Positions 6,229 through 55,536 of a stretch of 64,000 nt of DNA are shown here, piece after piece. Location: the NCBI RefSeq assembly GCF_032444005.1, contig NC_091288.1, positions 220,844,001-220,908,000 of the forward strand, written 5' to 3'. The position numbers were made by a program, and so were the translations under genes. The notes beneath the pieces are model-generated. The model did not search any database. It had not been told where the DNA came from and worked only from the letters and a program-made list of their open reading frames with translations. Numbering within the stretch: position 1 is the stretch's first letter; each line of letters begins with the position of its first letter. This DNA is from Ranitomeya imitator (taxonomy: Eukaryota).

Positions 6229-7440
6229 TGTGCTGCCAGGGTCCTGTTTGTTGCAGTAATGTCCTTCTTCCACCAGGGGGAGTGATGTTACATCTGAAGG
6301 CAATAAAGGAGATCACTTTACAATGTATCACAAACCACACAACACACTTCATACTCCAGTCCACCAGGGGGAGCTATGCTCCTATTTAGTAGGGCACTCT
6401 TCACAATTAGGTAAAACTGGTGGTCTGGATAGGAAGTTAGTCAGAAGCGAGCTGGGCTTCACTCAGTTAGCTGCTATCTGAGTTCCACTCAGGTAGTGGG
6501 TCCCTGACAGGGGTGGGATCCTGTCAGAAGTCTAGGCAGAAGGCTACGGAGCTGCGTTGGCCCGACATGCGGCAGCATCCTAAGAAAGAGACATTCAAGG
6601 AGAATTGTGTTGCAGAGAGTGAGAACCGAAGTCATAGAAAAAGGAGAGGAAACCAGAAGGAGTTCTGCCCTGTAAAAGGCTGCCTCCTTTCTGAGGCGCA
6701 AGATCCGGTAGCCGGAACACCGAGGGAGTCATCGTCTCCAAGCCTTGCTCCAGAGACCGGCAGGACAGCTAATTCCATATTAGTTGCCCGACCTTTTCCC
6801 AGGAGGCACGGTGGCAACTTGTGGGGGCTGGGGCGTGCTAGAATCCCTGTAAAAAGCCTCAGGCCATCAGTCACATGGGTTGTTTCTATCCATCTGGGGC
6901 ACAGAGAGAAAGATATAACATCTCCAGCAGTTGTGAGGACCGTATGAGAAGCTCAGCAGTAAGGTACTACAACATCCAGGCGCTAAAGGAAGGCTACTGA
7001 TTTCCACCTGGATAAGGGGACTCTGGAATTGCCTTCAGACCGGCCGGACTCTGCCTGCCCTGTGATCCGATGCTCTGGACTGTGGATGCTGAAGCCTTCA
7101 GTAAAAAGGTAAAGAGACTGCAACCTTGTGTCCTCGTTCTTCACTGCGCCTCACACCATCCACTATCTACACTTCTGGGAAGCCCTGGGGACATACTTCA
7201 CCTGTGGGAAGGTATGCCATCTAGCTGCCATAACATCACCCCAGTGGACCCCTTAAAGGAGCGTCGGTCACCCTGACCGAATACCACAGGTGGCGTCACA
7301 AACACTATCCCTTTAAAGACCTTTCCCCATTTACAATGGACGTCCCTTAGGGCCACGGACTGGGTCAGCCACCGTGACATCCCCCTTGAGAACCGAAGGG
7401 CCCGGCTCCGAGTGCCCCACTGCCCTACGGGGGCGGTCCA
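6229..7440 (+). mobile_element. Solo LTR, ~1.2 kb, same family as 8149-9426 and 48519-51496
   Basis: Shares CCACCAGGGGGAGTGATGTTAC, GGCTACTGATTTCCACCTGG, CAGACCGGCCGGACTCTGCC and CATCACCCCAGTGGACCCC blocks with the other copies; ends GGGGGCGGTCCA. Left terminus degraded and no TSD found. Confidence 0.75.
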
Positions 7441-8148: not shown

Positions 8149-9426
8149 TGGAGCGCCCCCAGACACAGGGCCACAGGTCACTCGGTACCGGTCCTTTCTG
8201 CTCGGTTCTGCGGTTGTCACGGTGGCTGGACCTGGTCGTGACCCTGCTAAGGGGCGTCCAATGAAGGTGGTAGTACAGTCTGTCAGGGGTTCGTGACGCC
8301 ACCTGTGGTGTTCGGTCAGGGTGACCAACGCTGCTGTGGGGTCCACTGGGGTGATGGAATGGCAGCTGGATGGTATATCTTCCCACAGGTGAAGTATGTC
8401 CCCAGGACTTCCCAGTAAGGTGGATGGTGATGGTGTGAGGTGCAGGCAATAACGAGGACACAAGGTTGCAGTCTCTTTACCTTTTTACTGAAGGCTTCAA
8501 TATACTCAGTCCAGAGCACGTTCAACCGGGTTATCAGAGACCGGCCGGTCCGATGGGCACATCCAGAGTTTCCCTCGCAGATGGCAATCGTTGCCTACCA
8601 ATAGCGCCTGTGTGTTGTAGTCCTACCCTGCTGAGCATTCGGAATAGTCCTCACAACTGCTGCCCTCGTTCGTTCGTTCTCTACAGCTCTCTCTCTCTCG
8701 TTCTTTGGTTCCAGATGTTGCTAGTTTCTAACGTCCCCCAGGTATATTTTGGCTAGGACGCCACCCGTTTGACGGGAAGGCTTGGAGGTCTTCCGGGACT
8801 CTAGAGACGCCCCTCTCCCAATGTTGCCCCCTATGTCTTCGTAGGTGTAGAAGGTAGACAGCCAACCTATAATCAACTGTCCAGCGGAATTTGAAGTAAG
8901 GCCTGAAGTCAGTTACTCCTACGGTGATCCGGCCACCGACTACGCGCCTCAGTAAGATGTTGCCTTTCTCTCTCGGCACGACTCTTACTGGCTCTCCTTT
9001 GTGCTGATCTCATTTACACTGTTCCACAATATCCTTCCCTTCGTGTCTCTCTCCTGGGATACCGCCGCAAGGTGTGCAGGCGCGGTTCCGTTACGTTCTG
9101 TTCTGTTTGCTAGGCACCTGCCAGGTTTCCACGCCTGACAGGGACCCCCCTGTGCCTTCTCCCTGCAACACTCCCTGCTACGGGATGTTGCCTGAATCCA
9201 ACCCAGTCAGCTTCTGACTAACTTCCTCCCCAGCCCCTAGTTTTACCAGTGTGAGGAGTGGCCCAATAAATAAAGCCTTTTTCTCCCCCTAGTGGCCGGA
9301 TTGTGAAGTGTAATGTGTTCTGGTGATACCTGGTCAGGAGAACTCTTTAGAGCCATCGGACGTACCATCACTCCCCTTAGTGGCAGAGCGACATTACTGC
9401 AACGACCAGGTCTCTGGGGCGCTGCA
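8149..9426 (-). mobile_element. Solo LTR, 1278 bp
   Basis: Termini TGGAGCGCCCCC...GGGGCGCTGCA; exact 4-bp TSD ATAA at 8145-8148 and 9427-9430; reverse-complement similarity to 6229-7440. Confidence 0.85.
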
Positions 9427-13220: not shown

Positions 13221-13504
13221 ATGTAGGTGCGAGTGCTATCCGTGAAAAATACAGCTAGAAATGGATGAGGAAATGGTCTATTTTTCCACTTTCTTGACTA
13301 CGTGAAGATTGTGAATGACTTTGACTTTCTCATTGACTACAAAGAAATGTTTTTGTAAATTTCTGGTTGATAACTCGTCTTTCCAGATTAAGACGTGCGG
13401 TGTTTTAGTTATTTGTGCAAATAAGACGAGTCTAGTTGAATGTGGGCGGTACATGCACACCACCCACCTTACTAGTGAGCTTCTCGCTCTACACCATTGA
13501 GGAC

Positions 13505-16500
13505 ATGGGCGCCCAGAGCAAAGTCCTGGGAATGCATCTGGTGCTGCTGATAATGGCCTTCATTGGTGAGTACCATCTTCTCCATCAGTTGTCCTTGGGT
13601 TTCTTGCACTTCCATACCATGTCATTGAGCCAATCTGGACACGTCTAAAAATGATTTGTTGTATTACAGCTCCCCTTTCTGCCTCCAATAACACAACATC
13701 ATCCCCACCGGTGTGCGGCTCCCCGGTCTTCTCCAGCCGGATAGTTGGAGGCACCAATGCTCTCGATGGAGAGTGGCCGTGGCAGATCAGCTTACGTTAT
13801 CATGGTAGCCATATATGTGGTGGGACCCTGATCTCCAGCCAGTGGGTGATGTCTGCAGCTCACTGCTTCTCAAGGTGTGTGATCACTGGGGTTAGAGAAG
13901 GACAATGATATGGCCGGAAACCCATGCACAATTATCTCATGTTTTTCTAGATAATTTACATTGGATGTGAAAATAATTTTCTTGGTTCCAGTAGGCTTTT
14001 CATGGAAGTGCTCCCCATTTTCTAGAAGCCTTCAGAGATGATCGTAAAAGATGATTTCTAAATCTATTGTGTATAACGATATTATTGTGGGACTTAAAGG
14101 AATAAGATGGAAAAGCAGTTATGTAGCAGCATATAGCGCCTTTAATTATATGGTTCTCTTCTTGCGGCTAATGGTATTTAAGTCCGCCTTGGATTATATA
14201 GCATTTTGAAGTGCCATAATAACTTATTAAGGACATTTTTGTGTCAAGGAAGTGATTCTACTGATGCCATAGTCGCCAACGTGACGTCATTCTTTTCTGT
14301 CTGTGGTCACCAATTTGCATTATACAAATAGCGCAGTCTCACTATGGCTACCTTCATCCACCATATCCTCTCCTCTCATTCCCAGGCCTGTCAGTCCATA
14401 TTCCTACACCATACAGCTGGGGAGATACCAGTTATCACTGGCGGACAATCATACAGTCACCTCTGATGTGAGTGACATCGTCATACACCCCCTGTATAAC
14501 TCAAGTGATGGACTCCAAGGGGACATCGCCCTACTGCAGCTCTCCAGTCCGGTCACCTACACCAAGTACATCCAGCCGATCTGCCTGCCCGCCGCCTCCG
14601 TCACCTTCCCCTGTGGCCTGGAGTGCTGGGTCACCGGCTGGGGCACCATAAACTCAGGAGGTAAGAGACGGCTTTATCAATTGTTCTTCAACTTTCATAA
14701 AATATAATTACATTTTCACTAACTTATAGGATTATGTCCAGATAAATGGCAAAACCACTGGAGAAGTGAAGACATGAGAGTAGGGAAGTGGAGAAAAGAA
14801 GGGAACACGGAGCAAAATTCAAGACTTGGACTGCTTGGTTTGGCAGAGTTTTGGTGGAAGGGGTTTACCATTTTTGCTGTTGCCTTGCGGTTGAGGTGCG
14901 CGAAGTGGTTGAAGTTGGGGCATCTTATTATGGGGAGTCTGTCCATTTTCTAGAGCTCATAAAGTGTAGACTCACAGTAAAGAGGTCCTTGTATGCTCTA
15001 AAAAATCCATAGCCTTAGAGTGTATGACCCTGCTGATTGGCAGACAGTAGTAGTAATATTTCCGGGACTCATCGCCCGTGTATTCGGTGAGTGGTGGCAG
15101 CGTGTATGAGCAAGTGTGCGGCCTGGGTCGGTGTATGATTTATGCTCCCATTGCAGCATTGGACAGAGGTTGAATGCTGGACTGAGAGTGGGGAGATAGA
15201 TTAACCCTTGTAGGCACAACCCCAAGTAATGTGCTGAGAAGCGGGTATGTGACAATGGCCAATAAGAAAATCTGCATTTTATTTTCGAAGTTGTGAAGTA
15301 AGACATAAGACACTCAAGACACATTTAGACAAGCCGACCATCAGTGAACTGGGATTTCTATGAACGCTCACGGTCATCAGCCCCTGTAGACATCAAGGAA
15401 CTACGGGATGAACGAGCTACACAATATTTTATGGCAGCATCAAAAATAATTATTGCTCTCGGCAGCACATAACCTAGTGTAAGCAGGAGATGTGCTGCCA
15501 ACAACATGAAGCTGTATGGGGAGAGAACCATCAAAATAATGATCGTTCTGTTCTCATCAGTATTCGCTAACAGGCCAGGTAATGAGCTTCGATCAACTTG
15601 TATATAGGCACTCGTTAATGGCCTAACCCTCTAGAGGCGTCCTTCCATAAAGACTCTGCATGGAGCACAAGTATGGCGGCGTTCTTGGGTCCATACTGAC
15701 CCGCCATGTAGTTCAGGGTGGCCGACGGGGTGCGTAAGCTTCAGGGTCACTTTCTTAATTGTAGGCATTGATTGGTGGTCTCCTTATGTCTCTCTTGAGT
15801 GTTCATTTGTCCCCCTCCTTTTGCAGTTGATTTATTGTACCCTGAAACTCTCCAGAAGGTGATGACTCCAATCATTGACCGAGCTCGATGTGATGATCTC
15901 TACCATGTGGGCTCCTACACCAGCAGCAGTATCTCCATCATCCTGGATGACATGATCTGTTCTGGTTACATAGATGGAGGCAAAGACTCCTGCCAGGTAC
16001 TGACTTGTCCGATGCCACCACCACCCTGTGGCGCCCTCCTGTAGGTGAACAGGCACGTGTACGGTAATAACTAGTGAGACAGTATCACCTAGAACAAATC
16101 TTTCTGAGCTCAAAATTTGCTCCATGGTCCCAATTCAATATTGCATTTAAAGGGAACCCGTCATGTAAAAAAAACACCATTATCCTGCAGAAATAGGGTC
16201 AATCTGCAGGTTAATAGCGTCCTACAGCCATGTGGCCGCCTCACTGAAAGACCGACTACTGGGAGGACATGAGCTTTATTCCTTCTGCCGCTTCTTGTTT
16301 TCAGTCATAGAGGCGCGGCCAGAGCGGCTTTAGTCACCTCCCTTAAAACAGAGCAGCGGCTGTAACCACACCTTGTCACTGACTGACAGCCAGCTCTGAC
16401 TGACAGCCGGCTCTGTACTTACACACTGCTCAGTCGGCTGTCAGTCAGTTGTTTGTTTTTCAGGTTGGTTTTTGTTTTGTGTCAAATTCTTTGAATAAGT

Positions 16501-17917
16501 TGGGCCAATTTAAAGTTTAATTTCTTCTTCATCAGTTTTATCATCTGTTCACCATAGTAGACGTGGTTTTTGGAACACTGATCTTTATTCCAGTCCTCTT
16601 CTGCACCCCTAGAGGTTTTTTTTTTTGGTATGCCAGAATTGTTTTGCACAAATATTAAAGTTCCATGTGTGTTTTTTAACGGATGGTGCAACTTTTTACT
16701 CCAACGATGCAAAAAAAAGCTAACAAACAAAAGTAGAGGACATTTGAACAAAAATTCTTTAACTCATGAGCGCCATTTTGAAGAATTTGTTGTAAAAAGC
16801 ATCAACAAATGCCGTAAGTCAGAAAAGAAAATGATTTAAAGGGATATCCTCAAGTTGTCTCTTGAGCAGCTCAGAGCTGCCTGACATGTGGCCGGGGCGG
16901 CTTTCATCCTTGAGGGACAGTTCTGATAAGCAGCAGAGCTGTTATATTAGTAGAACTGTAAAGCTCTGCACATGTTCTGCTACAACACTTTCATCAGTGG
17001 TTTGTTCTGAGTCTACACTTCCATCACTGGATATACACATAGAGATAACAGGGCATTTAAACAATGCTCCGGCCAGTGAGAGCAGTGACTAGGGGAACTT
17101 CACTGGAAGAAGCATATATGGGAGCAATTTTGCAAGATTTATAACAGCAGATTGTCAGGAGCTGAGAAGGAGGGGTATGTGAGCAGATCTTCTGTATAGA
17201 AATCAATGGGCTGCAGAGAGGTGGCTGGGATATTAGGAGTTAACCCTTCACCTATGCACAGTGGAGGAGCTCCATGGAAAACAGCTGTACACTATGAAAG
17301 ATAAAAGCCCTCACAGCAGGAGAATGTCAGCAGATACTGTAGAAAAAGCAAGTCAGTTCCAACTTGTTTATTTTCATGATGTCTAACTAATTAAAGCAGT
17401 TTGATAACTGGAGAATACCCCTTTAATAAAAACCACACACAACGAATTGAGCTATACATTTGCTGCTGATTGTAGACATATCTGTGTAGTGATGGGGTGA
17501 TCGTCTTTGTTTCCTTGTCCCTGGAGTAACTTGTCTGGATGTGGTTGAGAATATAGGACCGATATTTGTTGATGGACATGGTCACCTTCATGTTACATAT
17601 TTTTTACTCTGCCAGATTAGGATGATTTTGTAGGACGACATTTTCCTTTTTCATAATTTCCGCTGAATCGTATTTCTTCCAGGGAGACTCCGGGGGACCT
17701 CTCATATGTAAAGTCCAAGGCGTCTGGTACCAAGCCGGTGTTGTAAGTTGGGGAGATGGATGTGCTCTATCGCATCGCCCCGGGGTGTACACCCTGGTAC
17801 CCGTCTATACACCATGGATCCAGAGCTACGTGGCGGATGTCACCTTCAGTGACCTTGGAGATATACCGCCACCTTCCATAGACTGTGATGCAATTTTTGG
17901 GACAACCGCATTGCCTG
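13505..17917 (+). CDS. Trypsin-like serine protease, signal peptide plus domain 1 (exons 1-5 of a probable two-domain gene)
   Basis: Exons 13505-13565, 13670-13874, 14386-14660, 15827-15996, 17683-17917, all GT-AG and in frame. [20 protein letters not shown] signal; CGSPVFSSR|IVGG activation site; triad AAHC, DIAL, GDSGGP; KDSCQ (Asp189). Reading through the 17918 donor reaches a stop at 17994. Confidence 0.92.
14720..15340 (-). mobile_element. Possible L1-clade ORF2 3' remnant in intron 3
   Basis: Minus-strand translation LSPAFNLC...GRTLAHT and downstream segments loosely resemble the C-terminal Cys-rich region of L1 ORF2; heavily degraded, boundaries approximate. Confidence 0.4.
16840..17422. 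mobile_element. T2/Kolobok-type MITE
   Basis: TTAA on both sides (16836-16839, 17423-17426); TIRs AGGGATATCCTCAAGTTGTC vs AGGGGTATTCTCCAGTTATC (16/20). Confidence 0.7.
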
Positions 17918-18373
17918 GTAAGAAGGAGACGCTGCCCTGTCGCCATGTTCCCGTGGTGCAGACTCTTGTTATAACAATCATAGTAGAAAAATAATTTTGA
18001 TTATTTTTCTCATTGGGTTGCAAAAACATTTACAAGTGAAACATTTGGGTAATTGGTAATTCAGGCAGCAGAAATATGTGATGATCTCTAGGAAATGTTC
18101 ATATATAATATTACGTTCTCAGAAAGGTGTATCTACAGTGAATGAGCCTTACCGGGTTAGTCCCAATTATTATGTTACTATCGTCTAACCCAAGAATTAG
18201 GGGTCACGTAATAATTGCCGGGAGTCTGACATCTGGAACGCTCTGCGATCCCGAAATCAGGGCTTTGGATCCAAGCTCCCCAGAGCTCCGACATCAATGG
18301 AGGTGCACATGACCTTCTGTCTGCCGTTGCTTGTGGAGGTGCCGGAGAATTAGAGCGCTGTGTTGGGGGGGGG

Positions 18374-19107
18374 TGTCATGATCCCAATGGCAGGGAATCA
18401 CAAAAGGACAAGCACAAACGAGCTTTAGGGTGATGGAACCTGAGCTGACCGCGACCCTAAACCTAAACACACAAATAATAATAGCCGGGGAACGTGCCTA
18501 CGTTGATCCTAGACGTCTCGCACCAGCCGAAGATCTAACTTCCCCTATTAGAAGAAACACAGACCTCTCTTGCCTCCAGAGAAATCCCCCACAGAAATAG
18601 CAGCCCCCCACATATAATGACGGTGAAATGAGAGGAAGGCACATATGCAGTAAGAAAACAGATTCAGCAAAATGAGGCCCGCTAAAACTAGATAGCAGAG
18701 GATACAAAAGTAAACTGCGCGGTCAGCAAAAAACCCTTCAAAAAACCATCCTGAAATTACTTGAACTCATGTTCCAACTCATGGAACATGAGGAGCAATT
18801 ACAGCCCACTAGAGCAACCAGCAGCAAAGAAACACGTATCTGCAAGCTGGACAAGACAAAAATAAAGCAAAACGTGGAACAAGGAAATCAAAAACTTAGC
18901 TTGTCCTGAAGATTACTGAAGCCAGAAGCTGAGGTAACAAAACACTCTGATAACCTTGATAGCCGGCCAGGAAATGACAAGAAAGCCTGGTTAAATAGGA
19001 AACTCCCATATCCTGATAGAACAGGTGGACACCAGAGACAGCAGAACACAAATCACCCAGTACCATCAGTAACCACCAGAGGGAGCCCAAAAACAGAACT
19101 CACAACA
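18374..19107 (-). repeat. 3' LTR of the chromovirus
   Basis: TG...CA termini; abuts the PPT (plus strand GTACCCCCCCGTTGAGG from 19108). Confidence 0.95.
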
Positions 19108-22100
19108 GTACCCCCCCGTTGAGGAGGGGTCACCGAACCCTCACGAAAACCACCAGGGCGACCAGGATGAGCCCTATGAAAAGCGCGGACCAAATCATCA
19201 GCATGAACATCAGAGGCAACCACCCAAGAATTATCCTCCTGACCATAACCCTTCCACTTGACCAAATATTGGAGTTTCCGTCTGGAAACACGAGAATCCA
19301 AGATCTTCTCCACAACATACTCCAATTCTCCCTCCACCAGCACCGGAGCAGGAGGCTCAAGCGAAGGAACAACAGGTACCTCATACCTCCGCAACAACGA
19401 CCGATGGAACACATTATGAATAGCAAACGATGCCGGGAGATCCAAACGAAACGACACAGGGTTAAGAATTTCCAAGATCCTATAAGGACCGATGAACCAA
19501 GGCTTGAACTTAGGAGAAGAGACCTTCATAGGAACAAACCGAGAAGACAACCACACCAAGTCCCCAACACGAAGTCGAGGACCCACGCGGCGACGGCGAT
19601 TAGCAAACTGCTGAGCCTTCTCCTGGGACAACTTCAAATTGTCCACCACATGACTCCAAATCTGATGCAACCTATCCACCACCATGTCCACTCCAGGACA
19701 ATCAGAAGGCTCCACCTGACCAGAGGAAAAACGAGGATGAAACCCCGAATTACAAAAGAAAGGAGAAACCAAGGTAGCAGAACTAGCCCGATTATTAAGG
19801 GCAAACTCGGCCAGCGGCAAAAAGGTAACCCAGTCATCCTGATCAGCAGAAACAAAACACTTCAAATAAGTTTCCAAGGTCTGATTAGTTCGCTCCGTCT
19901 GGCCATTCGTCTGAGGGTGGAATGCAGACGAAAAGGACAAATCAATGCCCATCTTAGCACAGAACGTCCGCCAAAATCTAGACACAAACTGGGATCCCCT
20001 GTCAGAAACGATGTTCTCCGGAATCCCATGCAAACGAACCACGTTCTGGAAAAACAGAGGGACCAACTCAGAGGAGGAAGGTAACTTAGGCAAGGGTACC
20101 AGATGAACCATTTTAGAAAAGCGGTCACACACAACCCAGATGACGGACATTTTCTGAGAGACAGGGAGATCCGAAATAAAGTCCATGGAAATGTGCGTCC
20201 AAGGCCTCTTCGGGATAGGCAAAGGTGACAACAATCCACTGGCCCGAGAACAGCAAGGCTTAGCCCGAGCACAAACCTCACAAGACTGCACAAAAGAACG
20301 CACATCCCTCGACAAGGAAGGCCACCAAAAAGACCTGGCCACCAAGTCTCTAGTACCAAATATTCCAGGATGACCTGCCAACGCAGAAGAATGGACCTCG
20401 AAGATGACTCTACTGGTCCAACTATCCGGAACAAACAGTCTCTCAGGCGGACAACGGTCAGGTTTACCCGCCTGAAACTCCTGCAAAGCACGTCGCAAGT
20501 CTGGGAAGACAGCCGACAAAATCACCCCATCCCTAAGGATACCAGTGGGCTCAGAATTTCCAGGGGAGTCAGGCACAAAACTCCTAGAAAGAGCATCCGC
20601 TTTCACATTCTTTGAACCTGGCAGGTATGAAACCACAAAATTGAAACGAGAGAAAAACAGTGACCAACGAGCCTGTCTAGGATTCAGACGCCTGGCAGAC
20701 TCAAGGTAAATCAGATTTTTGTGATCAGTCAAGACCACCACACGATGTCTAGCACCCTCCAGCCAATGACGCCACTCCTCAAATGCCCACTTCATGGCCA
20801 AAAGTTCCCGATTACCAACATCATAATTCCGCTCAGCGGGCGAAAATTTTCTAGAAAAGAACGCACATGGCTTCATCACCGAGCAATCGGAGCTTCTCTG
20901 TGACAAAACCGCCCCTGCTCCAATCTCGGAAGCATCAACCTCAACCTGGAAAGGAAGCGAAACATCTGGCTGACGCAACACAGGAGCAGAAGAAAACCGG
21001 TGTTTAAGTTCCTGAAAGGCCTCCACAGCCGCAGGAGACCAATCAGCAACATCAGCACCCTTCTTAGTCAAATCCGTCAAAGGCTTAACAACACTAGAAA
21101 AATTAGTTATGAAACGACGATAGAAATTAGCAAAGCCCAAGAACTTCTGTAGACTCTTAAGAGATGTAGGCTGCGTCCAGTCACAAATAGCCTGAACCTT
21201 GATGGAATCCATCTCAATAGTAGAAGGGGAAAAAATATACCCCAAGAAAGAAATCTTCTGGACTCCAAAGAGACACTTTGAGCCCTTTACAAACAAAGAA
21301 TTGGCCCGCAGGACTTGAAACACCTTCCTGACCTGCTGAACATGAGACTCCCAGTCATCAGAAAAAACCAAAATATCATCCAAATACACAATCATAAATT
21401 TATCCAGATATTCACGGAAAATATCGTGCATAAAGGACTGGAAGACTGGAGGAGCATTAGAAAGTCCGAAAGGCATTACCAAATACTCAAAATGGCCCTC
21501 AGGCGTATTAAATGCGGTTTTCCACTCATCACCTTGCTTTATTCGTATAAGATTATACGCACCCCGAAGATCAATCTTAGTGAACCATTTAGCCCCGTTA
21601 ATGCGAGCAAACAAATCAGTCAACAAAGGCAAAGGATACTGATATTTTACGGTAATCTTATTCAAAAGACGATAATCTATACAAGGCCTCAAGGAACCAT
21701 CTTTTTTGGCCACGAAAAAAAAACCTGCTCCCAAAGGGGACGAAGATGGACGGATATGTCCCTTTTCCAAGGACTCCCTAACATAATCCCGCATAGCAGT
21801 ATGCTCTGGCACTGACAGATTGAACAAACGACCTTTAGGAAATTTACTACCAGGAATTAAATCTATAGCACAATCGCAATCCCTGTGAGGTTGAAGCGAA
21901 CTGAGCTTAGGCTCCTCAAAAACATCCCGATAATCAGACAAAAATACAGGAACCTCAGAAGGAGTAGATGAAGCGATAGAAATCGGAGGTGCATCATCAT
22001 GAACCCCCTGACATCCCCAGCTTAACACAGACATTGTTTTCCAGTCAAGGACTGGATTATGAGTTTGTAACCATGGCAGACCAAGTACTAGAACATCATG

Positions 22101-23168
22101 TAAATTATACAATACCAGGAAGCGAATCACCTCCTGATGAACGGGAGTCATACGCATGGTCACTTGTGTCCAGTACTGAGGTTTATTCATAGCTAAAGGT
22201 GTAGAGTCAATTCCCTTCAAAGGAATAGGGACTTCCAGAGGCTCAAGACTAAAACCACATCGCTTGGCAAATGACCAATCCATAAGACTCAGGGCAGCGC
22301 CTGAATCCACATAGGCATCGACGGAAATGGATGATAATGAACAAATCAGAGTCACAGACAGAATGAACTTAGACTGTAACGTACTAATGGCAACAGACTT
22401 ATCAACCTTTTTTGTGCGTTTAGAGCATGCTGATATAACATGAGCTGAATCACCACAATAAAAGCACAACCCATTTTTCCGCCTATAGTTTTGCCGTTCA
22501 CTTCTGGACTGAACTCTATCACATTGCATTGTCTCAAGTGCCTGTTCAGAAGACACCGCCAAATGGTGCACAGGTTTGCGCTCCCGTAAACGCCGATCAA
22601 TCTGAATAGCCATAGTCATAGACTCATTCAGACCTGTAGGCGCAGGGAACCCCACCATAACATCCTTAATGGCCTCAGAAAGGCCATCTCTGAACTTTGC
22701 AGCCAGGGCGCACTCATTCCACTGAGTAAGCACTGACCATTTCCGAAATTTTTGACAATATATTTCTGCTTCATCTTGCCCCTGAGAGAGAGCTAATAAA
22801 GCTTTTTCAGCCTGAATCTCTTGGTTAGGTTCCTCATAGAGCAAACCCAATGCCAGAAAAAACGCATCCACATTAACCAACGCAGGATCCCCTGGTGCCA
22901 ATGCAAATGCCCAATTTTGAGGGTCACCCCGCAGGAAAGATATAATAATCTTAACCTGCTGAGCAGGGTCTCCAGAAGAGCGAGATTTCAAAGAAAGGAA
23001 CAACTTGCAATTGTTCCTAAAATTCAGAAAACTAGATCTATCTACAGCAAAAAACTCTGGGATAGGAATTCTAGGTTCAGACATAGGAGCACGTACAACA
23101 AAATCTTGTATATTTTGAACCTTAGCAGCAAGATTATTCAGGCTGGAAGCTAAACTCTGGACGTCCAT
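19053..23168 (-). CDS. Gag-Pol polyprotein, 1371 aa, uninterrupted
   Basis: Gag; CCHC knuckle CFYCGDSAHVISAC; protease YVDSGA; RT LRPCIDYR and YLDDIL; RNase H DAS/ELLA/TDHKNL; integrase HSSALAGHPG..CEVC, SMDF, SDRG, TERTN, GPY; chromodomain EYVVEKILDSR..QYLVKWKGYGQEDNSW. Stop lies inside the 3' LTR. Confidence 0.97.
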   Translation of the reverse strand: MDVQSLASSLNNLAAKVQNIQDFVVRAPMSEPRIPIPEFFAVDRSSFLNFRNNCKLFLSLKSRSSGDPAQQVKIIISFLRGDPQNWAFALAPGDPALVNVDAFFLALGLLYEEPNQEIQAEKALLALSQGQDEAEIYCQKFRKWSVLTQWNECALAAKFRDGLSEAIKDVMVGFPAPTGLNESMTMAIQIDRRLRERKPVHHLAVSSEQALETMQCDRVQSRSERQNYRRKNGLCFYCGDSAHVISACSKRTKKVDKSVAISTLQSKFILSVTLICSLSSISVDAYVDSGAALSLMDWSFAKRCGFSLEPLEVPIPLKGIDSTPLAMNKPQYWTQVTMRMTPVHQEVIRFLVLYNLHDVLVLGLPWLQTHNPVLDWKTMSVLSWGCQGVHDDAPPISIASSTPSEVPVFLSDYRDVFEEPKLSSLQPHRDCDCAIDLIPGSKFPKGRLFNLSVPEHTAMRDYVRESLEKGHIRPSSSPLGAGFFFVAKKDGSLRPCIDYRLLNKITVKYQYPLPLLTDLFARINGAKWFTKIDLRGAYNLIRIKQGDEWKTAFNTPEGHFEYLVMPFGLSNAPPVFQSFMHDIFREYLDKFMIVYLDDILVFSDDWESHVQQVRKVFQVLRANSLFVKGSKCLFGVQKISFLGYIFSPSTIEMDSIKVQAICDWTQPTSLKSLQKFLGFANFYRRFITNFSSVVKPLTDLTKKGADVADWSPAAVEAFQELKHRFSSAPVLRQPDVSLPFQVEVDASEIGAGAVLSQRSSDCSVMKPCAFFSRKFSPAERNYDVGNRELLAMKWAFEEWRHWLEGARHRVVVLTDHKNLIYLESARRLNPRQARWSLFFSRFNFVVSYLPGSKNVKADALSRSFVPDSPGNSEPTGILRDGVILSAVFPDLRRALQEFQAGKPDRCPPERLFVPDSWTSRVIFEVHSSALAGHPGIFGTRDLVARSFWWPSLSRDVRSFVQSCEVCARAKPCCSRASGLLSPLPIPKRPWTHISMDFISDLPVSQKMSVIWVVCDRFSKMVHLVPLPKLPSSSELVPLFFQNVVRLHGIPENIVSDRGSQFVSRFWRTFCAKMGIDLSFSSAFHPQTNGQTERTNQTLETYLKCFVSADQDDWVTFLPLAEFALNNRASSATLVSPFFCNSGFHPRFSSGQVEPSDCPGVDMVVDRLHQIWSHVVDNLKLSQEKAQQFANRRRRVGPRLRVGDLVWLSSRFVPMKVSSPKFKPWFIGPYRILEILNPVSFRLDLPASFAIHNVFHRSLLRRYEVPVVPSLEPPAPVLVEGELEYVVEKILDSRVSRRKLQYLVKWKGYGQEDNSWVVASDVHADDLVRAFHRAHPGRPGGFREGSVTPPQRGGTVVSSVFGLPLVVTDGTG
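19108..19124 (-). other. Polypurine tract (PPT)
   Basis: Minus strand CCTCAACGGGGGGGTAC immediately precedes the 3' LTR. Confidence 0.8.
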
Positions 23169-23330
23169 GATAAACAGCTAAGGTCAGAGCCATTCAAGTA
23201 TTAAGAGGAGGAAAAAATCAGCCAGGCTGCAATTAGGGCTAGGCAGCAACCTCAGAGGAGTGGGGAAAAAAAAAAAAAAAAAAAAAACTTCCTCAGACTA
23301 CTTTTCCTCCTACTTCAGCCAAAACTTTCG

Positions 23331-23342
23331 GGCCGGCTATAC
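23331..23342 (-). other. Primer-binding site of self-priming type
   Basis: Minus strand GTATAGCCGGCC directly after the 5' LTR; lacks the TGG start of tRNA PBSs; 10-nt perfect complement to LTR positions 23928-23937. Confidence 0.8.
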
Positions 23343-24076
23343 TGTCATGATCCCAATGGCAGGGAATCACAAAAGGACAAGCACAAACGAGCTCTAGGGT
23401 GATGGAACCTGAGCTGACCGCGACCCTAAACCTAAACACACAAATAATAATAGCCGGGGAACGTGCCTACATTGATCCTAGACGTCTCGCACCAGCCGAA
23501 GATCTAACTTCCCCTATTAGAAGAAACACAGACCTCTCTTGCCTCCAGAGAAATCCCCCACAGAAATAGCAGCCCCCCACATATAATGACGGTGAAATGA
23601 GAGGAAGGCACATACGCAGTAAGAAAACAGATTCAGCAAAATGAGGCCCGCTAAAACTAGATAGCAGAGGATACAAAAGTAAACTGCGCGGTCAGCAAAA
23701 AACCCTTCAAAAACCCATCCTGAAATTACTTGAACTCATGTTCCAACTCATGGAACATGAGGAACAATTACAGCCCACTAGAGCAACCAGCAGCAAAGAA
23801 ACACGTATCTGCAAGCTGGACAAGACAAAAATAAAGCAAAACGTGGAACAAGGAAATCAAAAACTTAGCTTGTCCTGAAGATTACTGAAGCCAGAAGCTG
23901 AGGTAACAAAACACTCTGATAACCTTGATAGCCGGCCAGGAAATGACAAGAAAGCCTGGTTAAATAGGAAACTCCCATATCCTGATAGAACAGGTGGACA
24001 CCAGAGACAGCAGAACACAAATCACCCAGTACCATCAGTAACCACCAGAGGGAGCCCAAAAACAGAACTCACAACA
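23343..24076 (-). repeat. 5' LTR of the chromovirus with TATA-like box (minus TATTTAA, 23960-23966)
   Basis: Near-identical to 18374-19107; TATA box ~29 nt upstream of the GGCCGGCTAT motif at 23937-23928. Confidence 0.95.
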
Positions 24077-24555
24077 GGGGGGGGGGCATTCTTAATCTGT
24101 GACTTAGCCTCTCACCAATAGATGGACATGAGTTGTGTAATGCTCGTTTTTCCTTTAATTTTTAAAGGGAACCTGTCACCAGGTTTGGCGATACGAGTTA
24201 CGGCCAAACCTTATGACACGGAATGATGGATTTTCCGGCTGAGCTCATCCACGCCCGTCCCTGCTCAGCTCCATTAGCCTTTAAATTTATTAGGCTGTGA
24301 CTGGTATAAAAATGGTGAAAGTCGCTATGTTTTTTGCACCATTTCAAATAGTTACTTGGCAGTAAATGTAAGAAATCAGTTTGATCAATCAGGGTTTATA
24401 TGTAAGGGGCGGCCATGGTCACTCAATACAAGTCCATTATCTGCAATCAGAAGCTGGCTTAGATGTCTAGAGATGACTCAATGACTTCTATGGGAGAAGA
24501 TGTACTCACCGTACTCCACCCAGGTGTTCATTACGCGTGCATTATGTTATTCTAG

Positions 24556-26435
24556 TGGCCAGTTATACCTCACCACCAGCCCCAACCTACTATTCTGTGT
24601 GCGGCTCCCCGATGGTCAATAACCGGATTGTGGGGGGCACGGATGCTACGGATGGAGAATGGCCGTGGCAGATCAGCCTGCGGTACTTTGGATTTGATAT
24701 CTGCGGGGGGTCCTTGATCTCCAACCAATGGGTCTTGAGTGCTGCCCATTGCTTCCAAAGGTGAGTACCAAGTTGTAATGTATATTATTTCCTGAAAACA
24801 CCAAGTGATGTCACTGAGAGACTCTATTCTTATGTTTCCTATTTCGAAGCTCCAAGAACCCAAACTATTATAGTGTTTATCTGGGAAAATACCGACAGTC
24901 GATCATAGACGACCATGAATATTACGCCTATGTACAGCAAATTATAACTCATCCTACATTTGTGGGGATAAAGGGTCCAGGAGACATCGCCCTGATTAAG
25001 CTGACTAGCCCCGTCACCTACACCAAATATATTCTGCCTGTCTGTTTACCATTGTCCTCGGTCACCTTCCCTACTGGACTGGAATGCTGGGTAACCGGCT
25101 GGGGAGACATCGGACCTGGTGGTAAGTCCTCCTTCATGATGCTTTGTTTTTCAGTTTTGTGATGTCCACGACATGTGACCATTGGAAATTCCACAACAAC
25201 GAGACAGTGTTAGTAGTTGACAGTCTCCCACTGATTGCTCTGATTTATGGAATTTCTCAGTTCCGTTGCTATCTGTGATAGGAGACTTACGGGCACTAAA
25301 TAGGTGGAAAGCTTCATGTCACCCAATGGCAAATGCAAAGAATAATCCGTGCTGGACAACATTTCCATCTCAGAGTCTAGGAATCATGGCCAAAATCTCT
25401 GTACAATATATCCAAAAATTGTTAAGGAGACCCCAGTATCTCTAGTCATGGTTGTCAAAGGAGTTCTCGACTGTGGCCAACACTACTTGTTAGAAAGGTT
25501 TCTTCATCTGAAGCAGTTAACAAATGTATTCTCCTGGTGGGACTGTGATCTAGTGGTAAGCTTGGCAGTAGGTATTACGTTTCCACGCAGTGCCACCACA
25601 GGAGGCTGTGAGCGTCTATTTGTATCAATGGGCTGTCTATGTAATGTAGGACAGGACAGGTCCTCCAGAGCTATAGACACTCTGCCCAAAAAATGAGGAT
25701 CTTCTAATAAAAATGGGTTTTGTAAATTAGATGACCCCCGGTAAGAATAATCATAAGACCTAAGGTTAATCGTTGCATAAATGCCACGTGAGGGATCAAA
25801 AATGTTTGGCTTTCCATATTTTTATGGTCGCTGATCATGCCTAGATTTGATGAGATGTCTTACAATGTCTTATATAACTCCACAGAGTTTCTACTGTATC
25901 CTGAGACTCTTCAAGAGGTGATGACGCCACTGATTGACTCCAAAACATGTGATGCCATGTACCACATAAACTCAGCTGTGAACACAAACACAAATATTAT
26001 CCTGGATGATATGATATGTGCCGGGTACAATTATGGGATGCAGGATTCGTGTCAGGTACATCAATTATTCATATACAGTTCTTCCATTCCATATTGTATT
26101 GTAGTCACTCATCGCATCATGTCCACCACTTAAATAGTCACCGATTCTGCTTTCCTTCCATCCAGGGAGATTCAGGAGGACCGCTGGTGTGTAAAGTACA
26201 AGGTGCATGGTATCAGGCCGGCATTGTCAGCTGGGGTGAAGACTGTGCTCTGCCGAACCGCCCCGGGGTCTACACACTCACCACAGCCTACCAGACCTGG
26301 ATACAAGCCTACATCCCAGAACTTAATTTTACTAACCTGGAATTTGTCGCAAATGGAAGTGACAAGCGTCTGGGTCCAGAACCGATGACTCTGATTCTTC
26401 TTTCATTCATCTTAATGTTTTTTAGTTTTATTTAA
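24556..26435 (+). CDS. Trypsin-like serine protease domain 2 with hydrophobic C-terminal (GPI-type) tail (exons 6-9 of the two-domain model)
   Basis: Exons 24556-24760, 24850-25121, 25886-26055, 26166-26435. CGSPMVNNR|IVGG, AAHC, DIAL, QDSCQ-GDSGGP; ends [27 protein letters not shown]. No own signal exon seen between 17995 and 24555 outside the retrotransposon. Confidence 0.9.
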
Positions 26436-27629
26436 GTAACGGCTCCAATGAATATTAAAAAGCACACTGGAAGTAAACTGAGAAACAGATGACCTCCCAA
26501 CATATCTCATCTTCTGATCTTCCGTCGTAGGTTACAATATGGGAGGACAGTCTGTCGGAATCACTCGGAATCTTAATTATATAGTTAATCGGGAATTGTT
26601 TCTCCAAACTCCCTGTGGGTGTGAACATGTCCACATGTGATGTCCACGTCTCATCCAGAGAAAAGTAAAAGAATAGCAAGCCAGAAGTTTATTTCATGAA
26701 TTATGGGAAATCCATTAATGCATGCAACTTCTCAAGTTATGGAAGCTACAGATGAGCAAACTGATGAGATGAAATGAACGTGACCTGGATTTTACCAAAA
26801 AGTGGTATTTCTGAATTTTTAGTGATTCACTTTGTTCAGTTTTTGAGGACCTTCTGAAGGTTTGAAAAATTACAAAATAGTATACTCACCTTGCCACTCA
26901 CAAGTCCTGCCACCACAGCTCCCAGCCCGGTCCTCCCTTGGCTCTGGTGTCTTCTAGCCTAGAATGACAGGTAATGTTCTTTTCTGTGTCTTTCTTCACT
27001 CTCCGCCGGCTATTCCTGAGCTGAGGAGGCCTCACACAATGCTCATCATGATATCTAGATGTCACAATGTGGATTCTCTAACTGTTTAAAGTAAAAGAAG
27101 ACCAGGCTGGAGTTGGAAAAACCTGGAAAAGAAAAGGAAGTCTCTATCTAATGTCAATGTTCTGTTCACACCAGTGGTGCATCCAATCGTGGGAGACAGA
27201 ACAGAAGTTCTCTTGCTACAATTCTGGCGCTAGGATTTTCCCGCTAAGCTGCAAGTCTCTCACTGATGTAGCCTATCAAACCTGTTGAGACTTCCACGCA
27301 CCAACCGGCCCCTCCCAAAATGAGACCCTAATCCCAGCCGACCAGTTACCGTAGAGACGTCACGGCCCTGCTCAAATATACTGTCCTTCCGCAGGCACAG
27401 GCACGTTCCACCTGCTGCAGTCTCCTCACAAATTTTCTCAGCTTTACCACTGGCGGAAGTCTCTTAGGATTGGGTCAGAGTGGACCAGGCCTCAGCTCCT
27501 GATGGGCGACGTCCGGTCTCCTGCTCTTTACTGGCGTGGGGTACGGATCCTGACACCGACTTGTGCAGGCAGAACTCAGAGTCCTGTGCAGAATCAGGGC
27601 CTTGTAAGATCATGGCTGACACCTTCCTG

Positions 27630-33181: not shown

Positions 33182-43244
<10,063 letters not shown>

Positions 43245-43601: not shown

Positions 43602-45803
43602 GGCACCAAACCCACTGAGACATAGACAAGAGAGGGGGCACCAAGCGTACTGAGACATGGACAAGAGAGAGGACACCAAACCTACTGAGACATGGACAAG
43701 AGAGAGGTCACCAAGCCTACTGAGACATGGACAAGAGAGAGGTCACCAAGCCTACTGAGACATGGACAAGAGAAAGGTCACCAAGCGTACTGAGACATGG
43801 ACAAGAGAGAGGACACCAAGCGTACTGAGACATGGACAAGAGAGAGGGGGCACCAAGCCTACTGAGACATGGACAAGAGAGAGGTCACCAAGCCTACTGA
43901 GACATAGACAAGAGAGAGGTCACCAAGCCTACTGAGACATGGACAAGAGAGAGGTCACCAGGCCTACTGAGACATGGACAAGAGAAAGGGCACCAAGCGT
44001 ACTGAGACATGGACAAGAGAGAGGACACCAAGCGTACTGAGACATCGACAAGAGAGAGGTCACCAAGCCTACTGAGACATGGACAAGAGAGAGGGGGCAC
44101 CAAGCCTACTGAGACATGGACAAGAGAGAGGTCACCAAACCTACTGAGACATAGACAAGAGAGAGGACACCAAGCGTACTGAGACATGGACAAGAGAGAG
44201 GTCACCAAGCCTACTGAGACATGGACAAGAGAAAGGTCACCAAGCGTACTGAGACATGGACAAGAGAGAGGACACCAAGCATACTGAGACATGGACAAGA
44301 GAGAGGACACCAAGCCTACTGAGACATGGACAAGAGAGAGGGGGCACCAAGCCTACTGAGACATGGACAAGAGAGAGGTCACCAAGCCTACTGAGACATA
44401 GACAAGAGAGAGGTCACCAAGCCTACTGAGATATGGACAAGAGAGAGGTCACCAGGCCTACTGAGACATGGACAAGAGAAAGGGCACCAAGCGTACTGAG
44501 ACATGGACAAGAGAGAGGACACCAAGCGTACTGAGACATCGACAAGAGAGAGGACACCAAGCCTACTGAGACATGGACAAGAGAGAGGGGGCACCAAGCC
44601 TACTGAGACATGGACAAGAGAGAGGTCACCAAACCTACTGAGACATAGACAAGAGAGAGGACACCAAGCGTACTGAGACATGGACAAGAGAGAGGACACC
44701 AAGCCTACTGAGACATGGACAAGAGAGAGGGGGCACCAAGCCTACTGAGACATGGACAAGAGAGAGGACACCAAGCCTACTGAGACATGGACAAGAGAGA
44801 GGGGGCACCAAGCCTACTGAGACATGGACAAGAGAGAGGTCACCAAGCCTACTGAGACATAGACAAGAGAGAGGGCACCAAGCGTACCGAGACATGGACA
44901 AGAGAGAGGGGGCACCAAGCCTACTGAGACATGGACAAGAGAGAGGTCACCAAGCCTACTGAGACATGGACAAGAGAGAGGGGGCACCAAGCCTACTGAG
45001 ACATGGACAAGAGAGAGGTCACCAAGCCTACTGAGACATGGACAAGAGAAAGGGCACCAAGCCTACTGAGACATGGACAAGAGAGAGGACACCACGCCTA
45101 CTGAGACATGGACAAGAGAGGGGGCACCAAGCCTACTGAGACATGGACAAGAGAGGGGGCACCAAGCCTACTGAAACATGGACAAGAGAGAGGGGGCACC
45201 AAGCCTACTGAGACATAGACAAGAGAGAGGGCACCAAGCCTACTGAGACATGGACAAGAGAGAGGGGGCACCAAGCCTACTGAGACATGGACAAGAGAGA
45301 GGTCACCAAGCCTACTGAGACATGGACAAGAGAGGGGACACCAAGCCTACTGAGACATGGACAAGAGAGAGGACACCAAGCCTACTGAGACATGGACAAG
45401 AGAGGGGGCACCAAGCCTACTGAGACATGGACAAGAGAGGGGGCACCAAGCCTACTGAGACATGGACAAGAGAGAGGACACCAAGCCCACTGAGACATGG
45501 ACAAGAGAGGGGGCACCAAGCCTACTGAGACATGGACAAGAGAGGGGGCACCAAGCCCCCTGAGACATAGACAAGAGAAAGGGCACCAAGCCCCCTGAAA
45601 CATCGACAAGAGAGGGGGCACCAAGCCCCCTCAGACATAGACAAGAGAGGGGGAACCAAGCCTACTGAGACATGGACAAGAGAGGGGGCACCAAGCCCCC
45701 TGAGACATAGACAAGAGAAAGGGCACCAAGCCCCCTGAGACATAGACAAGAGAGGGGGCACCAAGCCCCCTGAGACATAGACAAGAGAGGGGGCATCAAG
45801 CCC
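43602..45803. repeat. 34-37-bp minisatellite
   Basis: Unit CACCAAGC(C/G)TACTGAGACATGGACAAGAGAGAGG(T/A/GGG); 35- and 37-bp units on the left, mostly 34-bp units on the right. Confidence 0.97.
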
Positions 45804-55080: not shown

Positions 55081-55471
55081 GTAACAGCAGGGCCGTCCCC
55101 TATCGTCCACCATAATGAGGGTCTCCGTAGTGGTAACCATGGCTACCTGGGTAGTGGCCCACTCAGATGGGTTTTGGCCCTCACTCCTGTGCTGAACCCC
55201 TCGTTACACCTCCACAATAACTCCATGAACCTACGAAGACTGATATCGGCCATTAATGATGAGTATGGAAAGGGGATGGGTGGGGACGGGACTTTGCTTC
55301 ATACATGTGAATGGTCATTAGGAAATTAGCATAAAAAAATCGTAAATTATACAAAGAGGCAATAAAAGAAAAAAAAGTCTCCAGATAGTCAAAAGTTTAA
55401 GAACTTTCCCTCCCACAACACATATATCTGTGGAGCTGCAAGGAACCAAAAGAAGGCGGCAAAGCGGAGAA

Positions 55472-55514
55472 ATGCCAAGGAACCTGCTCCATGTGCTGAC
55501 AGTCCTACATGTGG
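55472..55514 (+). CDS. First (signal-peptide) exon of a further serine protease paralog; remainder presumably right of the window
   Basis: ATGCCAAGGAACCTGCTCCATGTGCTGACAGTCCTACATGTGG|GTAAG = MPRNLLHVLTVLHV+G; 43 nt, phase 1; 32/43 nt identical to 33182-33224; upstream region also homologous. Confidence 0.72.
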
Positions 55515-55536
55515 GTAAGAGGCTGCACTTATAGGG

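Follow-up and report, generated by a model that had tools for sequence, protein, structure and literature searches.

The locus described here lies in a 64,000-nucleotide stretch of the genome of Ranitomeya imitator (assembly GCF_032444005.1, contig NC_091288.1, positions 220,844,001 to 220,908,000), referred to as the window, to whose positions all coordinates correspond. Three trypsin-type units are found on its + strand, at 13.5-18.0, 24.5-26.4 and 39.5-43.2 kb. The exon borders of units 1 and 2 were read directly by hand, and the evidence presented below indicates that these two units quite probably form a single gene, with a two-domain mRNA as its main product. Their features are the following.

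13505-13565, + strand: exon 1 of unit 1, signal peptide; 61 nt, phase-1 donor ttg/GTGAGT
13670-13874, + strand: exon 2 of unit 1; 205 nt
14386-14660, + strand: exon 3 of unit 1; 275 nt
15827-15996, + strand: exon 4 of unit 1; 170 nt
17683-17917, + strand: exon 5 of unit 1; 235 nt, donor ctg/GTAAGA
24556-24760, + strand: exon 2' of unit 2; 205 nt, acceptor ttattctag/TGG
24850-25121, + strand: exon 3' of unit 2; 272 nt
25886-26055, + strand: exon 4' of unit 2; 170 nt
26166-26435, + strand: exon 5' of unit 2, terminal exon; 270 nt including the stop
13670-17917, + strand: domain-1 cassette (exons 2 to 5); 885 nt, phase 1 in and out, with VCGSP, SSR/IVGG, His/Asp/Ser, Asp189 and the stalk DIPPPSIDC
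24556-26435, + strand: domain-2 cassette and terminal exon, with the end of the linker, IVGG, His/Asp/Ser, Asp189, a hydrophobic end and the stop

All borders of the nine exons carry AG/GT with compatible phases. Joining them gives 1863 nt, corresponding to 620 codons and a stop, and the codon created at the 17917/24556 junction (G/TG) encodes Val, in agreement with the 620-residue model proposed in the preliminary description of this DNA. Exon 1 encodes a hydrophobic stretch, and its second ATG, at 13532, may be the true start; an ATTAAA hexamer is located at 26454, 19 nt past the stop of unit 2.

All eight domain exons match PF00089 (Trypsin), covering jointly profile positions 1-220 in each unit. 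The catalytic residues of S1A proteases are present alike in units 1 and 2 (AAHC, GDIAL and DSCQ/GDSGGP, for His57, Asp102, Ser195 and Asp189), together with a pro-peptide Cys and an activation site, which read VCGSP...SSR/IVGG in unit 1 and VCGSP...NNR/IVGG in unit 2. These motifs bear out the earlier claim that both domains retain the triad, Asp189 and R/IVGG, and support the prediction that both are active, Arg/Lys-specific S1 proteases. The closest solved structure is that of human prostasin (PDB code: 3dfj, E 7e-84). The C-terminus of unit 2 consists of NGS, the spacer DKRLGPEP and a 16-residue hydrophobic end (Kyte-Doolittle value of 3.06 across 11 residues), and fits the rule for a glycosylphosphatidylinositol (GPI) signal, being a candidate anchor signal. 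The hydrophobic tail after domain 2 had been pointed out before; to this it should be added that the read-through tail of unit 1, discussed below, is fairly hydrophobic too. Altogether, the predicted product would probably be a protease tethered to the membrane, in which two active S1 domains precede a GPI-type tail.

An additional feature distinguishes the two domains. Among the domains of the proteins retrieved in the homology searches, the stalk that follows the domain has a Cys in 40 of the 41 that possess the Cys of the FPCG motif, vs 53 of the 123 that lack it. Unit 1 has both (14620-14640 and 17875-17890) and unit 2 has neither. The pairing suggests an extra disulfide that would pin the stalk to the domain.

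The joining of both units depends on the donor at 17918. It obtains 4.9 with a simple position weight matrix, within the range of the other donors of the gene (4.7-8.3), which agrees with the preliminary description, where this site is called a strong phase-1 donor. Exon 5 of unit 1 contains no other good donor. Since donors of that strength occur 0.42 times per kb, the ~160 nt from the end of the domain to the stop would be expected to contain a phase-compatible one about 0.02 times by chance. On the other side of the junction, the direct reading of the borders agrees with a protease exon that starts at a phase-1 acceptor at 24556 and has the same 205 nt as exon 2.

A comparison with other amphibians was made using homologues gathered by a profile-free search from P0001 and word searches from P0008 and P0174. 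These searches returned many amphibian models named 'transmembrane protease serine 9-like', so that the tandem-domain homologs anticipated in anurans do exist, and several of them have the same junction. Models of R. variabilis, Anomaloglossus and Rhinoderma contain the equivalent of 17917>24556, reading ...GTMSST/ in R. variabilis P0174 and ...GTVATP/VASYTSPP in Anomaloglossus P0158. In Rhinoderma P0008, the order is domain 1, Ser/Thr linker, domain 2 and hydrophobic tail. The RefSeq models of R. variabilis (P0174), Anomaloglossus (P0158), Rhinoderma (XP_075687739.1, that is P0008) and Hyla sarda (P0164) share domain order, junction and tail with the R. imitator model and, judged from their sequences, are orthologous to it domain by domain. 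They differ in the length of the linker, which ranges from 41 to 123 residues. The domain exons of unit 1 are nearest to R. variabilis P0312 (88-95% per exon), and unit 2 is 88-95% identical to domain 2 of P0174.

In a tree of the domains, the sequences of domain 1 and those of domain 2 group apart, each in its own clade spanning hyloid families (support 98/90 and 97/89), which indicates that the domain pair predates those families. Moreover, ten of the retrieved domains share 70% identity or more with domain 2 and score closer to this domain than to the references for domain 1 and unit 3. Seven of these ten are preceded by a domain-1 stalk with a clean linker, two belong to models truncated at an internal Met, and the remaining one (Hyla P0171 d1), the first domain of its protein, has a junk N-terminus and falls in the domain-1 clade of the tree. 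None of the ten, which come from five hyloid frog families, has a signal peptide of its own. A survey of the linkers found 'clean' Ser/Thr/Pro linkers in many anurans, salamanders, a caecilian and the coelacanth; a second class, to which P0201 belongs, contains a hydrophobic tail and a signal peptide, the mark of a fusion made by the predictor.

The same design is observed in genomic DNA. In Rhinoderma (sequence L001), exon 5 of domain 1 has a donor (ACAG/GTAAAG) at the same position of the stalk, followed by an intron of ~0.8 kb and the acceptor ttattgtag/TGACCAGTT, vs ttattctag/TGGCCAGTT in R. imitator. In Spea (sequence L002), the same donor is followed by a stop 8 codons on, and a mini-exon of 17 Ser/Thr codons lies ahead of domain 2. 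When the DNA of Ranitomeya and Rhinoderma is compared, the exons flanking the spacer between domains 1 and 2 align and nothing within the spacer does. Exon 1 and the flank upstream of it (13474-13605), which served as a positive control, do align with positions 8722-8846 of the Rhinoderma sequence (E 6e-18), where a first exon not annotated in that genome, at about 8773-8806, encodes MFPVLLMTFFF and ends in phase 1 with G/GTGAGT.

The number and integrity of the domains vary between species. Frog models contain 2-5 domains, those of Ascaphus and Leptodactylus among them. An extra cassette of domain-1 type (type B: P0174 d1 and P0017) is found in R. variabilis and Phyllobates, between the orthologues of units 1 and 2, and is absent from both R. 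imitator assemblies. In R. variabilis, the model that contains this cassette begins from an internal Met and has no signal, and the protein of this species may have three domains. A loss of cassette B through crossing-over between two copies of exon 2 was considered, and the mosaic pattern of exon 2' gave no simple fit. In Spea bombifrons, domain 2 (at about 6900-6960 of the sequence above) has SGW/IVGG in place of R/IVGG, the activation site being lost and the triad kept.

The two-domain reading of this locus is not new, because a matching gene model is found in the public annotation. The annotation of GCA_032444005.1 contains, upstream of the model P0201, a + strand gene with a 606-residue product and two Trypsin matches. 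This product terminates 6747 nt before the ATG of P0201 (window 33182; the last exon of P0201 matches the window at 100%), that is, at 26435, the last base of the stop of unit 2. A start at the in-frame ATG 13651, combined with the 17917>24556 junction, gives 224+275+170+235+205+272+170+270 = 1821 nt, or 606 residues and a stop. From the coincidence of end point and length, the junction is taken as already present in that annotation; the 606-residue protein itself was not among the results of the searches seeded with P0008 and P0174. ATG 13651 is intronic, just 5' of exon 2, and R. variabilis P0312 begins at the homologous ATG. By this arithmetic, both the 606-residue model and P0312 would have no signal peptide, and 13505-13565 is likely the true first exon. 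The one-gene reading rests on the support that it receives from both the public annotation and the comparative DNA.

The 6.6 kb that separate 17917 from 24556 are largely occupied by a retrotransposon, with the following parts.

18374-24077, - strand: intact chromovirus (Ty3/gypsy) long terminal repeat (LTR) retrotransposon, antisense to the protease gene
18374-19108 and 23343-24077, - strand: LTRs of the chromovirus; 735 bp, 5 mismatches, 99.3% identical
19053-23168, - strand: gag-pol open reading frame; 1371 residues, uninterrupted, with RVT_1, RNase H, integrase, chromo, gag and aspartyl protease

The element interrupts a poly-G run, where its insertion probably caused a 5-bp target duplication (GGGGG), and is young, because its LTRs are 99.3% identical. 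Subtracting it leaves about 930 nt from donor to acceptor. The same 6.6-kb spacing, and hence the chromovirus, is observed in the second R. imitator assembly; among the species compared, only R. imitator has it in the inter-domain intron.

However, several observations weigh against a single two-domain gene. The junction in the 606-residue model is deduced from length and end point, and that model may have been built by chaining protein homologies instead of from RNA. In R. variabilis, the annotated orthologue of unit 1 (P0312, 328 residues) stops after read-through and the next model begins from an internal Met. The GenBank annotation of the second R. imitator assembly breaks the locus into pieces of 213, 148 and 201 residues; a 148-residue 'unnamed protein product' of R. 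imitator matches exon 5 of unit 1 at 99% identity. Also, predictors fuse neighbours in this array, as revealed by the 'linkers' of P0201 and P0010, which contain a hydrophobic tail and a signal peptide. Moreover, the reading frame continues past the donor of unit 1:

17918-17994, + strand: read-through past the internal donor of unit 1; 25 codons, stop at 17992-17994

The tail encoded by this read-through is hydrophobic in both Ranitomeya species (Kyte-Doolittle value of 2.65). Finally, the chromovirus adds seven sense-strand poly(A) hexamers to the intron, and the first AATAAA past the stop of unit 1, at 18861, lies in an LTR.

These last observations would fit a locus that makes both forms, the donor at 17917 being an alternative 5' splice site within a potential terminal exon. 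Splicing would lead to the two-domain form and read-through to a single-domain protease with a hydrophobic, possibly GPI-type tail, a short form that the poly(A) signals of the transposon may favor in R. imitator. The value of 2.65 falls within the 2.5-3.3 of the real tails of the family, and the tail is kept in P0312, where the NCBI model uses the read-through end. Nonetheless, an open stretch of 25 codons after the donor arises by chance about 30% of the time, and the read-through is reduced to 7 codons in the Phyllobates model and 8 in Spea, or extends over 28 weakly hydrophobic codons in Rhinoderma, which argues against a conserved function. In addition, neither AATAAA nor ATTAAA is found in the non-transposon part of the spacer or between the stop of unit 1 and the transposon. 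The production of both forms appears an unlikely, if reasonable, alternative; 17918-17994 is most likely intronic and possibly an alternative tail of a short isoform.

The splits and the frequent fusion artefacts in the array would be accommodated if there were two separate single-domain genes, unit 1 ending at 17994, unit 2 having a first exon that escaped recognition and the two-domain models of the databases being fusions made by predictors. A generic scan for signal exons yielded two candidates for such a first exon (both 61 nt, phase-1 and hydrophobic), the better of which is:

24122-24182, + strand: leading alternative first exon of unit 2; 61 nt, MDMSCVMLVFPLIFKGNLSP, poor donor cag/GTTTGG (score 0.3)

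This exon was judged not real, given its donor and the lack of similarity to the Rhinoderma spacer, and the other candidate, 18142-18202, was dismissed for a donor score of -3.9 and its lack of conservation in Rhinoderma, unlike the real exon 1. The earlier finding of no signal exon between the units is supported by these results. A paralogous copy of the promoter and exon 1 of unit 1 was sought upstream of unit 2 and none was found, and the spacer sequence has no repeat elsewhere in the window. Two independent genes are also at odds with the lack of a signal peptide in every retrieved relative of domain 2, with the conservation of donor, acceptor and phase as far as Spea, and with the fact that unit 1 alone would have no conserved anchor. 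This arrangement is therefore considered improbable.

A different scenario is that the gene once had two domains and has been uncoupled in R. imitator by the 5.7-kb chromovirus, so that transcripts would end in the element and leave unit 2 as a silent orphan whose sequence is still undecayed. The youth of the insertion, its presence in both assemblies and its poly(A) hexamers are in line with this. However, antisense intronic LTR elements are commonly tolerated, the exons, splice sites and catalytic residues of unit 2 are all intact, and the public annotation joins the units across the element, making an uncoupled locus very improbable.

For the single two-domain gene, the following scheme is proposed. 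In the mRNA, position 17917 (end of exon 5 of unit 1) would be spliced to 24556 (start of exon 2'), across an intron that would have measured about 930 nt before the young chromovirus inserted antisense. The protein would comprise, in order, a signal peptide, a prostasin-like domain 1, a Ser/Thr/Pro stalk or linker, a prostasin-like domain 2 and a GPI-type hydrophobic tail. Each catalytic domain would correspond to a four-exon cassette (205 + 275/272 + 170 + 235 nt, that is 885/882 nt) with phase 1 at entry and exit, the signal exon preceding only the first cassette and the anchor signal following only the last one. Cassettes of this kind could be gained or lost without breaking the frame, which would explain the 2-5 domains per frog model and is a possible cause of the type B difference between R. 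imitator and R. variabilis/Phyllobates. By analogy with prostasin and the polyserases, cleavage at SSR/IVGG and NNR/IVGG would activate each domain, and the Cys of VCGSP would keep its bond with Cys122 (ICLP/VCLP) in the next domain, with the result that both active domains would stay tethered to the membrane. The NGS-spacer-hydrophobic end would be exchanged for the GPI anchor. A more tentative idea, and rather a doubtful one, is that of a cassette variable in copy number whose donor lies where an ancestral anchor signal would begin, in such a way that one exon could lead either to an anchored one-domain enzyme or to a multi-domain enzyme, a choice that the chromovirus, which supplies the closest poly(A) signals in R. 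imitator, may shift.

Regarding known proteases, prostasin (PRSS8) resembles the frog domains in the pro-peptide Cys before R/I(V/T)GG and in its trypsin-like Asp189, and differs from the frog protein in having a single catalytic domain. Prostasin is a GPI-anchored enzyme with a C-terminal hydrophobic anchor signal. Polyserase-1 (TMPRSS9) also has several S1 domains in one membrane-bound precursor, the first two being active, whereas it is a type II protein with an N-terminal anchor, a low-density lipoprotein (LDL) receptor A module and an inactive third domain. PF00057 and PF01390 are found on true TMPRSS9 proteins and are absent from the frog relatives, and 13505-26435 contains the signal exon and S1 cassettes and no other exon, hence neither the anchor nor the LDL-receptor class A module of TMPRSS9. 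The RefSeq name 'transmembrane protease serine 9-like' is only a best-hit label. The ovochymase and oviductin polyproteases, unlike the frog protein, contain CUB domains and are secreted proteins of the egg or oviduct. Among them, Xenopus ovochymase and Bufo oviductin are precursors from anurans that contain two or more S1 domains (PMC1435904).

The closest mammalian design is that of human polyserase-3 (PRSS53), encoded at 16p11.2 beside prostasin and polyserase-2, for which it was proposed in 2006 that disulfides link the cleaved domains (PMC1435904). As in the frog protein, a signal peptide, two tandem S1 domains, a short spacer and paired Cys around the activation sites are present (PMC1435904). 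The preliminary description contrasted the frog protein with mammalian polyserases on account of their dead domains, a contrast that holds for polyserase-1 and polyserase-2 but not for polyserase-3, which keeps both triads (PMC1435904). Polyserase-3 differs in other respects: it is secreted, without a hydrophobic tail, has no R/IVGG in either domain and shows GLSGA for GDSGG in domain 2, whereas the frog protein has canonical R/IVGG and GDSGG in both domains and a GPI-type tail. Literature searches on amphibian GPI-tailed tandem proteases returned nothing specific, nor was any experimental study found in them of this family, of which amphibians and the coelacanth have many diverse members.

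Unit 3, further downstream, has its own signal exon (33182-33223), located 6.3 kb upstream of its exon 2, a body at 39.5-43.24 kb and a hydrophobic tail. The 676-residue P0201 leaves this unit just before its stop, through a 56-codon exon (55349-55516), and enters the signal peptide of the next unit, so that this model seems to combine two single-domain genes fused by the predictor. About 360 nt past the stop of unit 3 begins a 35-bp minisatellite (43602-45802; 62 copies, 91% matches), which is the reason for the extreme AT skew of that region.

The locus corrects public models, since the conserved signal exon 13505-13565 is missing from the 606-residue model and several neighbouring 'multi-domain' models are visible fusions. 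Moreover, if the junction is real, this frog would have a membrane-tethered protease with two canonical, activatable trypsin-like domains, a combination that mammals do not show: prostasin has one domain and polyserase-3 has neither the anchor nor the activation motifs.

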